A DNA stretch of 64,000 nt from Dimorphilus gyrociliatus (taxonomy: Eukaryota > Animalia > Annelida), in NCBI GenBank assembly GCA_904063045.1, contig CAJFCJ010000007.1, positions 4,099,404-4,163,403 on the forward strand, in the 5' to 3' direction. Under the pieces are notes generated by a model that saw only the letters and a list, made by a program, of their open reading frames with translations, did not search any database and was not told the DNA's origin. Position 1 is the first letter of the stretch. Each line of letters starts with the position of its first letter. Positions 47,255-64,000 of the stretch are shown one piece after another. The translations under genes were made by a program, and so were the position numbers.

Positions 47255-48613
47255 TTAACATGGACTGCCCACCTGAAAGACTTTGAAAACGTTAATTAAA
47301 AGGAAACTACATAAGGCTCCGACAAGAGAACCACCTTGATTAACCACACCACACCATAACAAACATTTCCTACCGTTATTCATTAATAAAGTGGCACAAC
47401 AGACTTTAGCATAGGATAAACATGCAAAGAGTATGACAGATGTTGAAATGATTAGGCATTTCCCAATCCAACCTTCTTTAAATGGTACTTCAGGACTGTA
47501 TGAAGCTATTGTCAGATGATAAATACAACAAAAACAGCCTAATACAGTTATTAAAACAATATAACATGAATTTTTCATACATTTAAACAAGGCAATGAAA
47601 CATACAAGAGGGTTTGCCAACATACCAAGCCTAACGGACAAATTGTAGGCCTGATTTCCGTATGGTAAACAACTATAAGTTTGAATAGACGGAATGATAC
47701 CATTTGTAAAGGCGTTAGAGACATATGTAACAGTTAAAAGTAAGATAACTTTGCCAGTTTCATTTTTATTTGCCCGATTTGATTGAATTTGAGAATCAGA
47801 TTTCCCTAAAGGTCTTGTTTCATTTTTGTTATAATGCTCCATTCTTTTTCGATAATAAAAGTGAAGGATAGAAAAGGCTATACATGAAACAGTTAAAACT
47901 GTCAAAAGAAAGAGCATGAAGGCAGAAACTGAGAATTTTGGGTCTTTATATTTAGGAATCAAAATCCATTGTGTTGAATTGGTTGAATTAACAGTTTGAT
48001 TAAAGCATACTGGCTCAGAACCTGTTCCTTGAATGAGACCAACCATTGAGGGCAGAAATCCACTTAAACCTTCACCAAAGTATAAAGCAGACATATATTG
48101 TGGATGGAAGAAAGCCATATAAGGCAAATAAACTACAGAGCTTGTACAATCAACAACAGCAAGTAACGATGCAAAAATGAAAAGATATAAGGATCGCTCT
48201 TTTCCGTTGATTATGGCAGTTTTGTTCCAAAAAGAATAGAGCATGACGGTAGATATCATGCCTACGACTATTATTATATATATGACGGGCCATTCCTTTA
48301 TTCTTTTAGATGAAACCTTTTCAAGTAATGTATAAATGAGTGGCCCAATATTTGCTATTTGAATTATGATAACTAAGTAAGACGATAGATTCCAAGATTC
48401 TGGTAAACGGTCAACAAAATATGGCAGTTCTACCCATAATCCATTAATATCTATCCAAGAAGAAGCTGCAAAGCAGGTGATAAGAATGTAAATCTTCCAA
48501 TCAACAAAAATTTTCCTATTATTTTTCAAAGGTGGTTTGTTTTGAACGAAAGAGTTTGTTAATTCCTCCATTTGTTTATCAGAGAATATTCCAGAATATT
48601 CATTTTCTGTCAT
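47255..48613 (-). CDS. SLC52A: Riboflavin transporter, SLC52A family; coding region intronless
   Basis: SSWIDINGLWVELP; ESWNLSSYL; VDCTSSVVYLPYM; GEGLSGFLPS; NGIIPSIQTYSCLPYG; multiple TM segments. Probable 5'UTR intron 48853-48618. Confidence 0.92.
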   Translation of the reverse strand: MTENEYSGIFSDKQMEELTNSFVQNKPPLKNNRKIFVDWKIYILITCFAASSWIDINGLWVELPYFVDRLPESWNLSSYLVIIIQIANIGPLIYTLLEKVSSKRIKEWPVIYIIIVVGMISTVMLYSFWNKTAIINGKERSLYLFIFASLLAVVDCTSSVVYLPYMAFFHPQYMSALYFGEGLSGFLPSMVGLIQGTGSEPVCFNQTVNSTNSTQWILIPKYKDPKFSVSAFMLFLLTVLTVSCIAFSILHFYYRKRMEHYNKNETRPLGKSDSQIQSNRANKNETGKVILLLTVTYVSNAFTNGIIPSIQTYSCLPYGNQAYNLSVRLGMLANPLVCFIALFKCMKNSCYIVLITVLGCFCCIYHLTIASYSPEVPFKEGWIGKCLIISTSVILFACLSYAKVCCATLLMNNGRKCLLWCGVVNQGGSLVGALCSFLLINVFKVFQVGSPC

Positions 48614-49431
48614 CGTCTGAAAGCAATTGTTAAATGATTGAAAATAATTTTAAATTAGAAAAGTGAAGGATGAATATGCGGGCGGAAGGGAACACATGGC
48701 TCTATTTGAAAAAAAATTCCCCCAGCAGTTGTTGATAGCGGCATTTCTAATTTCGTAATTATTATAAATATTTTAATATTACATTAAATTGTTAAGACAG
48801 CTGTGAAAATATAGGTACAATAAGATTTTTACAGGTACAAATTTTACACTCACGCCTATTCTTTATACTATCGCGTAATAAGTCACCTTCAATCTAATTT
48901 CATTTTTATCAAAAATGAAAGTTGATTAAATGTGCAAGTCCTCACTTCACTATTTAAGAATAAAAATGCCAAAGCTTTTACTGCCAATAAGGTGAAAACG
49001 TGTCATCAGTTTTGTTACTTGTTCTTGACATGATGAAAATATTATGAATGAAATAGTACAAAATATACCAGTTTTTACTGACACTTTCAGTTGAGAAACT
49101 GGAATAATTGTTAAACTAGAGTAATTTGCGCAGTACTGTTTTTTAAGCAAAAAATTTTAAAATAAAAAAATAATGTTACGAAACTCAATATCGTTTATTA
49201 ACAAAATTTTAAACATTATTACGAAACAATGAGACTTGAATAAAATATACAAAATTTTAGCTTGAATTCTTGAGAATGCAAAGTTCTTCAGATTCTAAAA
49301 CCTGAAAAAACCTGAAAACATATAAACAAATACAATCCTACTCTTAACTATATAACAATTTTTTTCATCTTTTCATATTTTTTTCCTACATTTTTTCATA
49401 TTTTTTTCTTTTTTCTTTTTTTTTTTTCTTT

Positions 49432-50818
49432 TCAATAAGGAGCAAACCAATTATAACGACGAGATCTGTAAGGGTAACTTAAATTTAGCGGTGGCTCAGC
49501 GTTTATAAATTTCATTAATGTAAAGCGGGGAATTTAAAGCGCAGCTGAAAAAGTAATGGGAAATTTAGAGGTTGAAATTCATGTTTAGAAAACTTAAGTA
49601 TGATACAAGAAATTTTCATCAGAATTTATCGTAAATACAAACCGTTCAGGCTATTACTGTGATAAAACACTTATCCGTATGGCGACAAGAGAATTGAAAT
49701 TCGAAACTTTTCATGTCAAACAAACTATCTACTCTGACTTCATGTATACAACTAAAGCCTTACAATTTGATTCAAACATCGAACACGTTCAGTGATGCAG
49801 TCAAGCCATTTTGAAACAATTATCGTGTTTTATCACTGAAAAAAATTATACATCCTTAAGATGTTTCAAACTGACCTGCCTGCTCCTCTAAAAGGACGTC
49901 TTTGGGTGAATCCAAAGAACCCTCTGCCTCTTCCTCTAAACCTCATTCCTCGAGGAGGACGATTAGTTGTACACATTCCTGGTTTGTTCGTTCGCTTTGG
50001 GCCAACCTGTTTTCATGAACATTTTATTATGATAAATGTTGAACACCCAAATATAAGACTTACTTTTATTTGTCTGCCTCTGAATAACGAGTCATCTAGC
50101 GCTTGAGCCGTGTTAACTGCGTCTTTATCACCAAATTCGATGTAAGCAAAACTAAAATGTAAATTTTATTGAAATATATGAATTGTGAACTGTTGATTTC
50201 AGATCTTTTACCCTTTTGGATGGCCGGAAAATTTGTCGCACATTATTGTTACGCGTTGAATAGCCCCGCAACCATGAAAGTGGGCTTCTAGTTCTTCTGC
50301 TGTTGCTGCATAATCCACCTGTATAATTGTTATTTTTAGAATGATTATCTATTTGAGGTGAATTTTCAACGGAGAAATAAAGGCTTTGCTTCGTCGAAAA
50401 TTCTTTGCATTTTCGCTTTAAAAAAGAATGAACTTACATTTCCAACATATATTGATCTAGAGTCTGCCTCTATTTTATCTTCGGTGCTACTAGCTGTTGG
50501 ACTACCGATGCTCTGATTTGTCATGTTCATTTGTTTTTCCACTTCATTTTGCATTTCGGCAAGTTTCTTAGCTTCCTCTTCCATTTCCTTTACCCTAGCC
50601 TTTATAGTTTCCAAATCAGATTCCTCGGTCGTTCCATCTTCTTCATTGCCATCATTCGTTTCATTTTCTTCACCATTTTCTTCCTCGCCGAAGGTGTAAT
50701 CTACATCGTCTTCATTATCCAAGGTTTCGTTTTCATCTAACGTCAAGGACTCCTCTGGAACTTCATCTCCATCGTCATGTTCACCTAGTAAAGCTTCTTC
50801 GTTCTCAATTTCCGACAT
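49432..50818 (-). CDS. PABPN1: Nuclear poly(A)-binding protein 1
   Basis: Acidic N-terminus; [18 protein letters not shown]; RRM ([27 protein letters not shown]...GHPKGFAYIEF); RG-rich tail; terminal exon 49465-49432 encodes [11 protein letters not shown]-stop. Confidence 0.95.
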
Positions 50819-51167
50819 CCTTACAACGCTTCTTTGGAAAATGTCTGCTCTTGCAGTGTAAAATGGAGACAGGAAACTAACGCGACTGGTATATCCGCCG
50901 GATTGGTTAGGATTTCTCTGAATATTTTACTCATCATTCTTGGGTTCGGAATGCTGTGCCACTCTATGCAGGGCATTTCAAAACCATGATAAAAACTTGT
51001 AAACATTGGATTTTTTGTTAGTTAAAAAGATAAAACAGTTAATTTCTGAATGAAACTTCTAAGAATTGTATGTTTTATTTTATGCATCAAATCTTAAGCA
51101 AAGCAAAACTAGCCTAACTGCTGAATTCAATATACTTTGCGAAGCATTTAGCGGTAGCAAATCGTCG

Positions 51168-51191
51168 ACGCATGCGCAATTGACAGGAAGT
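51168..51191. promoter_or_regulatory. NRF1-like plus ETS-like motifs in the PABPN1/SNIP1 divergent promoter
   Basis: ACGCATGCGCA at 51168-51178; CAGGAAGT at about 51184-51191. Confidence 0.5.
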
Positions 51192-51281
51192 ACCATTTAT
51201 CGCCCAGTACTCAATTTTGCACGAAAAACGAGGGAAACGTTTCAGTCGTGACGGCGAATTTTATACAAATAAGAAATTAAA

Positions 51282-52119
51282 ATGTCTTCTAAGAGATCTT
51301 ACAGTAGAGATAGAAGAGATAGGAGAAGTGACGACAGGAGTGCCAAACGACGTGATATTAAGAGACAGCATAGCTCTGATTCAGAGAGTCCAAGAAGAGA
51401 TTCCTATGATAGAAAAAGACAGAGAGATAGATATGATAGAAGGGTGAGTTATTTTTCAGTTTTTACTAATTCTTCTTTCTAAAGTCATTAAACTAACTTA
51501 ACAGGATAGAAGAAACGATCGGCCCAAACACTCACAACACGCAAAGTCTTACTCAGATATGTTCGGTAAAAAAGAAAAAGTTGACGAAAAGAAAGAACCT
51601 GAGAAGCCTAAAGAGAAACCTAATTTTGGTTTATCGGGAAAATTGGCAGCAGAAACTAATACCTATAAAGGTGTAGTAATTAAGTATGCGGAGCCACCTG
51701 AAGCTATGAAGCCGAAGAAGAGATGGAGATTGTATCCTTTTAAAGAAGGAGAAGCCCTAAGCACACTGTATATTCATAGACAATCAGCATATTTAATAGG
51801 TAGAGATCGAAAAATTGCTGATATGCCAGTAGATCATCCTTCATGCTCAAAACAACACGCTGTTATTCAATATAGACTTATGCCGTTTACACGGGAAGAT
51901 GGATCAAAAGGAAAGCGTGTAGTACCTTATATAATTGATTTAGGATCAACGAATGGAACATATGTCAATGGAGAACGTATAGAAGCTCAGCGTTATGTAG
52001 AACTTATTGAAAAAGACCTTCTAAAATTTGGATTTTCATCCAGAGAATACATTCTGTTACATGAAAATAGTGGGAATGCTGGAGGTAGTCCTCGGGAAGA
52101 CAGCCCTAAATCAGCCTAA
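51282..52119 (+). CDS. SNIP1: Smad nuclear-interacting protein 1 (FHA domain; RES complex Pml1 orthologue)
   Basis: RS/RD-rich exon 1; EKPNFGLSGKLAAETN; KYAEPPEAMKPKKRWRLYPFK; DHPSCSKQHAVIQYR; IDLGSTNGTYVN; FGFSSREY. Confidence 0.95.
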
Positions 52120-63200: not shown

Positions 63201-64000
63201 CTTCTTCTTTTTCTTTGCGAATCCTCTCTTCTTCTTTTTCTTTGCGAATCCTCTCTTCTTCTTTTTCTTTGCGAATCCTCTCTTCTTCTTCTTCTTTACG
63301 AATCATCTCTTCTTCTTTCTCTTTGCGAATTCTCTCTTCTTTTTCTTTGCGAATTCTCTCTTTTTCTTTCTCTTTGCGAATCCTCTCTTCTTCTTTCTCT
63401 TTTCGCATTTTCTCTTCTTCTTTCTCTTTTCGCATTTTCTCTTCTTCTTTCTCTTTTCGCATTCTCTCTTCTTCTTTCTCTTTTCGCATTTTCTCTTCTT
63501 CTTTCTCTTTTCGCATTCTCTCTTCTTCTTTCTCTTTTCGTATCCTCTCTTCTTCCTTCTCTTTGCGAATTCTCTCCTCCTCCTTCTCTTTGCGAATTTT
63601 CTCCTCCTCCTTCTCTTTGCGAATTCTCTCTTCTTCCTTCTCTTTGCGAATTCTCTCTTCTTCCTTCTCTTTGCGAATTCTCTCTTCTTCCATAAGTAAC
63701 CGATCTTCTTCTTCTTCTTTCAACCTTCGAGCGTCTTCTATCTCTTTTCTAGCTGCTTCCTCTCGCAGCCGTTTTTCTTCTTTCTCTTTTAGTTTCTTAT
63801 CTTTTTTTTTCTCTTTTGCTGATTTCTGTATTTCTTCCTTTTCATTGTCCTGATCACTCTGCTGAATCTCTTCTCTAGACTCCCCCATTGATGTATTTCC
63901 TACTGCTGAGAGAAATATGTCAGTTTATAATCAAAATATATATTTAAAAAGTTACATTTTTCCTCATCTGAAGAAGTTTGTTCAGGCTGAATTTTTCTCT
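60265..64000 (-). CDS. ACIN1: Acinus (apoptotic chromatin condensation inducer 1; ASAP/EJC component); 5' end outside the window
   Basis: ITSSSIKEMFGHIKP; RRM LLVRNLVRPFTVSQLKNIL...WIDNIKTHCY...WPSSNPKLLTVDF; RSB motif KLLDDLFHKTEASPSIYWLPL; upstream charged exons on the same strand joined by phase-consistent GT-AG introns. Confidence 0.88.
63115..63693 (-). repeat. Coding 27-bp tandem repeat, about 21 copies of KEKEEERIR, in ACIN1
   Basis: Unit such as GAAGAGAGAATTCGCAAAGAGAAGGAA; two units are shortened to 24 bp; frame preserved throughout. Confidence 0.95.

Follow-up and report, generated by a model that had tools for sequence, protein, structure and literature searches.

PABPN1 shapes the choice of poly(A) sites, and its dosage matters, low or aggregated PABPN1 underlying oculopharyngeal muscular dystrophy. 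According to summaries of Bergeron et al. 2015 (PMC5602073, PMC12385487, PMC5737383), human PABPN1 autoregulates its expression through retention of its own 3'-terminal intron, which it promotes by binding an A-rich region of its 3' UTR; this binding antagonises the splicing driven by SR proteins, and the nuclear exosome destroys the RNA that keeps the intron. The PABPN1 orthologue of the annelid Dimorphilus gyrociliatus, analysed here, is similar to the human circuit: the gene is orthologous, its terminal intron is retained, an A-rich tract of the 3' UTR lies near the stop codon, and the intron-retaining RNA forms a sizeable pool. The homologous intron position and an A-tract were also seen in this work in a lamprey and a snake. 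The annelid locus differs from the human circuit in its intron of 410 bp, set in a genome with a median of 66 bp, and in a tract that starts 1 nt after the stop codon. Binding of PABPN1 to the tract, competition with an SR protein, nuclear retention and exosome decay are demonstrated in human cells only. Within the literature searched, no report of the PABPN1 autoregulatory layout outside mammals was found. The Dimorphilus gene is probably a new, deeply conserved member of this known circuit, and the human-type feedback loop may be ancient. Should the layout work in the annelid, the circuit would date to early bilaterians, and the locus would provide a minimal arrangement, a 410-bp intron and a 73-nt tract, for dissecting how oligo(A) controls an adjacent intron, together with a compact, conserved intronic element as a test target.

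Three further systems are close enough for comparison. PABPN1 also affects the retention of 3'-terminal introns in many human genes (PMC10158996). These PABPN1-sensitive introns resemble the one described here in being terminal, enriched for longer introns and linked to both PABPN1 and polyadenylation; they differ from the autoregulatory case in the direction of the effect, loss of PABPN1 raising retention in that set and PABPN1 promoting it in the autoregulatory case, and either sign could apply in the annelid. Detained introns and the poison-exon autoregulation of SR proteins, ARGLU1 and FUS (PMC5602073) share with this locus the highly conserved intronic sequence in the gene of an RNA-processing factor, and their regulated intermediate is likewise an incompletely spliced, polyadenylated RNA. 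They are unlike it in two respects: no cassette poison exon was seen here, the sole joint of the terminal intron in the RNA contigs being 49465/49876, and the proposed sensor is an A-tract in the 3' UTR rather than intronic sites. PABPC1 autoregulates through an A-rich element in its own 5' UTR. As is proposed for PABPN1, the poly(A)-binding protein there responds to an oligo(A) stretch that the genome encodes within the protein's own transcript; PABPC1, however, is a cytoplasmic protein and the outcome is translational repression by way of the 5' UTR, whereas the Dimorphilus protein is nuclear and the proposed control concerns the 3' UTR and splicing.

Coordinates refer to the window, the whole 64-kb stretch of D. 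gyrociliatus DNA that was analysed, and the PABPN1 features lie on its minus strand. Reverse-complement reading with a scripted frame check gave a gene of five coding exons, separated by introns of 119, 60, 57 and 410 bp that all run from GT to AG, with a spliced coding sequence of 741 nt (246 aa plus stop). The coding part of exon 1 (50438-50818), delimited by the open reading frame and the donor AAT/GTAAGT, encodes an acidic N-terminus, a coiled coil and the start of the RRM. The RRM continues in exon 2 (50212-50318; Pfam RRM_1 positions 8-37, E 7.5e-4) and exon 3 (50064-50151; RRM_1 positions 41-70), the splice joints of both being present in RNA contigs, and exon 4 (49876-50006) encodes the RG-rich C-terminal region. 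Taken exon by exon, the Pfam RRM_1 pieces make up a single RRM preceded by a coiled-coil segment, as is typical of PABPN1. Identity searches, also done exon by exon, retrieved 222 proteins with exon 1, the named ones being polyadenylate-binding protein 2 or PABPN1 of many animals; identity was 100% to DgyrCDS6682 of D. gyrociliatus and 45-69% to the named PABPN1/PABP2 proteins. The spliced model has an RG-rich C-terminus with the ending (W/Y)(F/Y)(S/A)PY, comparable to RRASWFSPY, RRPWFSPY and RRAYYSPY elsewhere.

The arrangement of the 3' end agrees with the original prediction, which had described a 410-bp terminal intron with the donor CAG/GTCAGT, a tiny last coding exon and an A-rich tract of about 73 nt directly after the stop. 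The intron is exactly as stated (49875-49466). It is followed by a last coding exon of 34 nt (49465-49432), which carries the C-terminal PY motif and ends in TGA at 49434-49432, and by the tract (49431-49359), a candidate PABPN1 binding site. RNA contigs from two runs cross the joint between exon 4 and the last exon, and a loose end in a third run also shows it.

The public gene model, P0001 (DgyrCDS6682), is 238 aa long and ends in GAGRSV, compared with the 246 aa of the spliced product. This ending is the exact read-through of the terminal donor (AGG TCA GTT TGA; 49866-49876), indicating that the public annotation used an intron-retaining transcript and lacks the family's conserved C-terminus. 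The five-exon model given here corrects the public one, which stops within the retained intron and leaves out the conserved last coding exon.

Of the 73 nt of the post-stop tract 56 are A (77%), with runs of 3, 12, 6, 7, 6, 7, 4 and 7 A. On both strands of the window, in which A makes up 33.6% of the bases, every other 73-mer is poorer in A, and only one other region reaches at least 65% of a single base over 73 nt; that region, at 63768-63851, is rich in T on the plus strand. Over 50 nt the tract attains 80% A, a value that no block reaches among the 638 examined elsewhere on the sense strand. AT-richness of the sequence does not account for the tract. The remaining 3' UTR seen in RNA extends over 49238-49358, within a 197-nt contig of the run X19 that covers 49238-49392. 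A further 27 letters hang loose at the 49238 end of this contig and correspond to the post-stop tract in inverted orientation, which may be a fold-back or an assembly artefact at a low-complexity tract. An AATAAA lies at 49199-49194, in a segment (49048-49221) with no RNA cover.

RNA evidence was drawn from contigs of four public runs placed on 48700-51300: X1, a marine metatranscriptome; X2, of low depth; X3, from a relative a few per cent diverged; and X19, of identical sequence. The terminal intron, which had been predicted not to be constitutively spliced, is indeed retained in the assemblies of X1, X3 and X19, in unbroken contigs that span 49439 to 49904, 49905 and 50006, respectively, while introns 1-3 have been removed in the same three assemblies. 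The X1 depths are 25.5 for the contig with exons 1-4 spliced, 13.1 for the intron-containing contig and 8.3 for the terminal spliced joint; the corresponding X3 depths are 1195, 526 and 1054. In X19 intron 4 and exon 4 are both contained in a single contig, which starts at 49439 and reaches 17 letters into exon 3, intron 3 being spliced out. The terminal spliced joint is absent among the contigs listed for this run, and the retained form is apparently dominant. The low-depth run X2 has the spliced form only. Contig depths, a crude measure of abundance, put the retained share at ~0.33 in X3 and ~0.6 in X1, values that would be too high if oligo(dT) had captured RNA by, or primed on, the genome-encoded tract, which lies 34 nt beyond the 3' end of the intron.

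Contaminating DNA was considered as the source of the intron cover and rejected. Neither introns 1-3 nor the intergenic DNA at 49048-49221 is covered in any run; genomic DNA therefore does not explain the signal, and retention is both substantial and specific to the terminal intron. The PABPN1 terminal intron probably behaves as a regulated, inefficiently spliced, or 'detained', intron. Its retention ends the reading frame after three intron codons (RSV-stop), with loss of the PY motif. One X1 contig matches the conserved intron block (see below) from 49575 upward and, on its other side, has 255 letters unlike the window; it could come from another strain or species sharing part of the intron element, or be chimeric.

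The terminal donor has a C at +3, which is unusual in U2-type donors. To assess constraint within the genus-level clade, the locus was compared feature by feature with genomic sequence from a relative more distant than that of X3 (contig L001/L003, identified by way of the protein P0002). Exons are 85-89% identical to L001, third codon positions 66% and introns 1-3 only 52-56%. The terminal intron is 77% identical overall, and identity climbs steadily toward the 3' splice site, with 153 of 168 aligned columns identical over the last 164 nt (49466-49629; 91%) and 78 of 82 positions over the last 82 nt (95%). High identity continues in the last coding exon (33/34) and in the first 29 nt of the A-tract (29/29), where the L001 contig ends; the far side of the relative's tract was sought through the neighbouring SLC52 gene, and the only close match was a 1.2-kb contig that stops short of it. 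The 3' part of the intron is more conserved than third codon positions (Fisher p = 2e-9) and than introns 1-3 (p = 9e-17). The 7.6 kb shared with L001 hold about five genes. Of all 80-nt windows in this sequence, 49403-49482, comprising the start of the tract, the last exon and the end of the intron, is the best conserved, and the third-ranked lies wholly within the terminal intron. The weak donor GTCAGT and the stop 9 nt into the intron are both conserved in L001. Comparison of X3 with the window gives a similar picture at closer range, the intron contig differing at 2.4% of positions and the exon pieces at 7.3%. As judged from these alignments, the 3' part of the intron, the last exon and the A-tract are under purifying selection, and the segment 49466-49629 is a candidate splicing-control element.

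The C-terminal exons of annotated PABPN1 genes were mapped onto their genomic loci in other animals. A phase-2 intron 10-12 codons before the stop was present in eight of eight other bilaterian species with a mappable C-terminal exon: the molluscs Gigantopelta and Argopecten, the nemertean Lineus, Priapulus, Limulus, the hemichordate Ptychodera, the lamprey Petromyzon and the snake Thamnophis. In Dimorphilus, Lineus, Limulus and Ptychodera this intron interrupts the codon of the same arginine, the one that precedes S-R-R. Since the position is common to the mapped species, the tiny last exon is an ancestral trait of gene structure and is by itself no evidence of a switch. In the Capitella locus the RRM exons are present, and terminal exons were not recognisable within 8 kb.

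The tract was measured as the maximum A share per 50-nt window within 250 nt of the stop. This maximum is 0.80 at +4 from the stop in Dimorphilus, 0.82 at +9 in Petromyzon, 0.68 at +40 in Thamnophis, 0.70 at +61 in Ptychodera, 0.82 at +78 in Gigantopelta and 0.74 at +92 in Argopecten. The tract thus lies within 100 nt of the stop in all six species (empirical block P <=0.03 for each against its own locus). Over the same 250 nt Lineus (0.42), Priapulus (0.30), Limulus (0.50) and the Onthophagus isoform examined (0.46) have no A-rich tract, so PABPN1 genes can do without one. These four loci (nemertean L006, priapulid L007, horseshoe crab L094 and beetle L013) keep the homologous terminal intron. 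The absence of the tract from three of three sampled ecdysozoans hints at a lineage-specific loss or a different sensor.

The original prediction is accordingly confirmed in part. The layout of a mammalian-type switch is real, but the tiny last exon is no mark of such a switch, being an ancestral position found also in species without the tract. The A-tract expected in relatives and at other invertebrate 3' ends occurs in L001 (its first 29 nt), Gigantopelta, Argopecten and Ptychodera, but not in Lineus, Priapulus, Limulus and Onthophagus. A second set was taken from JGI metatranscriptomes and comprised 42 PABPN1-like transcripts of unknown taxa, all non-redundant and with a product that ends in PY. 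A 40-nt window with at least 70% A occurs in the first 190 nt after the stop in 12 of the 42, compared with no T-rich window in any (p = 2e-4); in the distal segment A-rich windows occur in 3 of 30 transcripts (p = 0.08 against the 12/42 near the stop). Together, the species survey and the metatranscriptome counts indicate that the post-stop tract is recurrent and strand-specific, though not universal.

On balance, by analogy with the human gene, the Dimorphilus terminal intron and tract would appear to form a working counterpart of the human PABPN1 feedback loop. Abundant PABPN1 would bind the genome-encoded A-tract, 0-73 nt downstream of the stop and next to the 3' splice site; the bound protein would hinder removal of the over-long terminal intron with its weak donor; the unspliced RNA would be non-productive, whether because it stays in the nucleus or is destroyed there or because it encodes a defective protein; and the output of PABPN1 would fall. 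We infer from human PABPN1 the binding, the direction of the effect, its dependence on dose and what becomes of the intron-retaining RNA. More tentatively, with the odds slightly against it, the terminal intron and post-stop A-tract can be seen as a device for PABPN1 autoregulation that was present in the ancestral bilaterian and is over 500 million years old. Annelids, molluscs, hemichordates and vertebrates would have kept it, ecdysozoans and nemerteans would have lost or replaced it, and the Dimorphilus version would include a hitherto undescribed, nearly invariant control element of ~160 nt by the 3' splice site.

Alternatively, a spliceosome adapted to ~66-bp introns may simply have difficulty with one of 410 bp that has a +3C donor, the A-tract being an unrelated element of the 3' UTR (for cytoplasmic PABP, stability or translation) or mere low complexity. 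An intron that is slow and neutral should diverge like introns 1-3, whereas the 3' part of this one outranks almost all nearby coding sequence in conservation; the weak donor is itself conserved, and the tract recurs at the same place in several phyla. Passive inefficiency is for these reasons an unlikely account of the locus, even though it fits the ancestral position of the last exon, shared with species that have no A-tract, and a genome in which the median intron is 66 bp and longer introns are generally more retained (PMC7854359). General length-dependent retention of this kind could explain part of the retention passively.

Retention might instead serve to make a second product, the 238-aa protein ending in GAGRSV, which without the PY motif would have an altered nuclear import or function, with no feedback coupled to decay. 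We consider this improbable as a full explanation, because it leaves both the A-tract and the ~160 nt of conserved intron far downstream of the in-intron stop unexplained, and because the truncation cuts off the most conserved C-terminal residues of the family. In its favour, the reading frame of the retained form closes 9 nt into the intron at a stop that L001 shares, the retained RNA is abundant, and the 238-aa form is the annotated product. The retained form has no downstream exon junction, and would be expected to escape EJC-dependent NMD. Feedback and a productive isoform without the PY motif may also exist side by side.

Least probable of all is that the long intron houses some other element (an enhancer, open chromatin or an unannotated small RNA) and is retained as a side effect: 944 ATAC-seq peaks do lie in unusually long introns of this species (PMC7854359), but conservation here rises toward the 3' splice site and continues into the last exon and tract, as for an RNA-processing element, and the intron has neither an Rfam match at E up to 1 nor excess folding stability.

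The Rfam scan covered 48500-51500, and its sole hit was a chance-level mir-239 outside the gene. Relative to shuffles, the intron plus tract gave a folding z of +2.27 and the conserved 3' block one of +0.92; as folding is no more stable than in shuffles, a structured element is not claimed. Within the intron there is a 12-bp perfect inverted repeat, its 5' arm at 49825-49836 in a block identical in L001 and its 3' arm at 49659-49670 likewise in an invariant island; between the two islands lies the stretch of the intron that varies most. The repeat is marginal, 3% of Markov-random introns reaching 12 bp. Pairing of the two arms into a stem that loops out the variable middle is possible, though folding energy lends it no support. 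An imperfect inverted repeat of 31 nt, 74% complementary, pairs 49862-49892, at the junction of exon 4 and the 5' splice site, with the intronic segment 49788-49818, whose core GGCTTGACT is a conserved island in L001; such pairing may mask the terminal donor.

PABPN1 is arranged head-to-head with a gene encoding an FHA domain (51282 onward; Pfam FHA E 1e-18), with ~460 bp between the two start codons (50819-51281). One X3 RNA contig bridges the two genes, which suggests overlapping divergent transcripts or a shared promoter. The downstream neighbour (47255-48613) is an SLC52 riboflavin transporter of 452 aa, apparently intron-less (Pfam E 3e-133). RNA cover in X19 reaches ~49030, placing the 5' end of SLC52 ~200 nt from the PABPN1 3' UTR.
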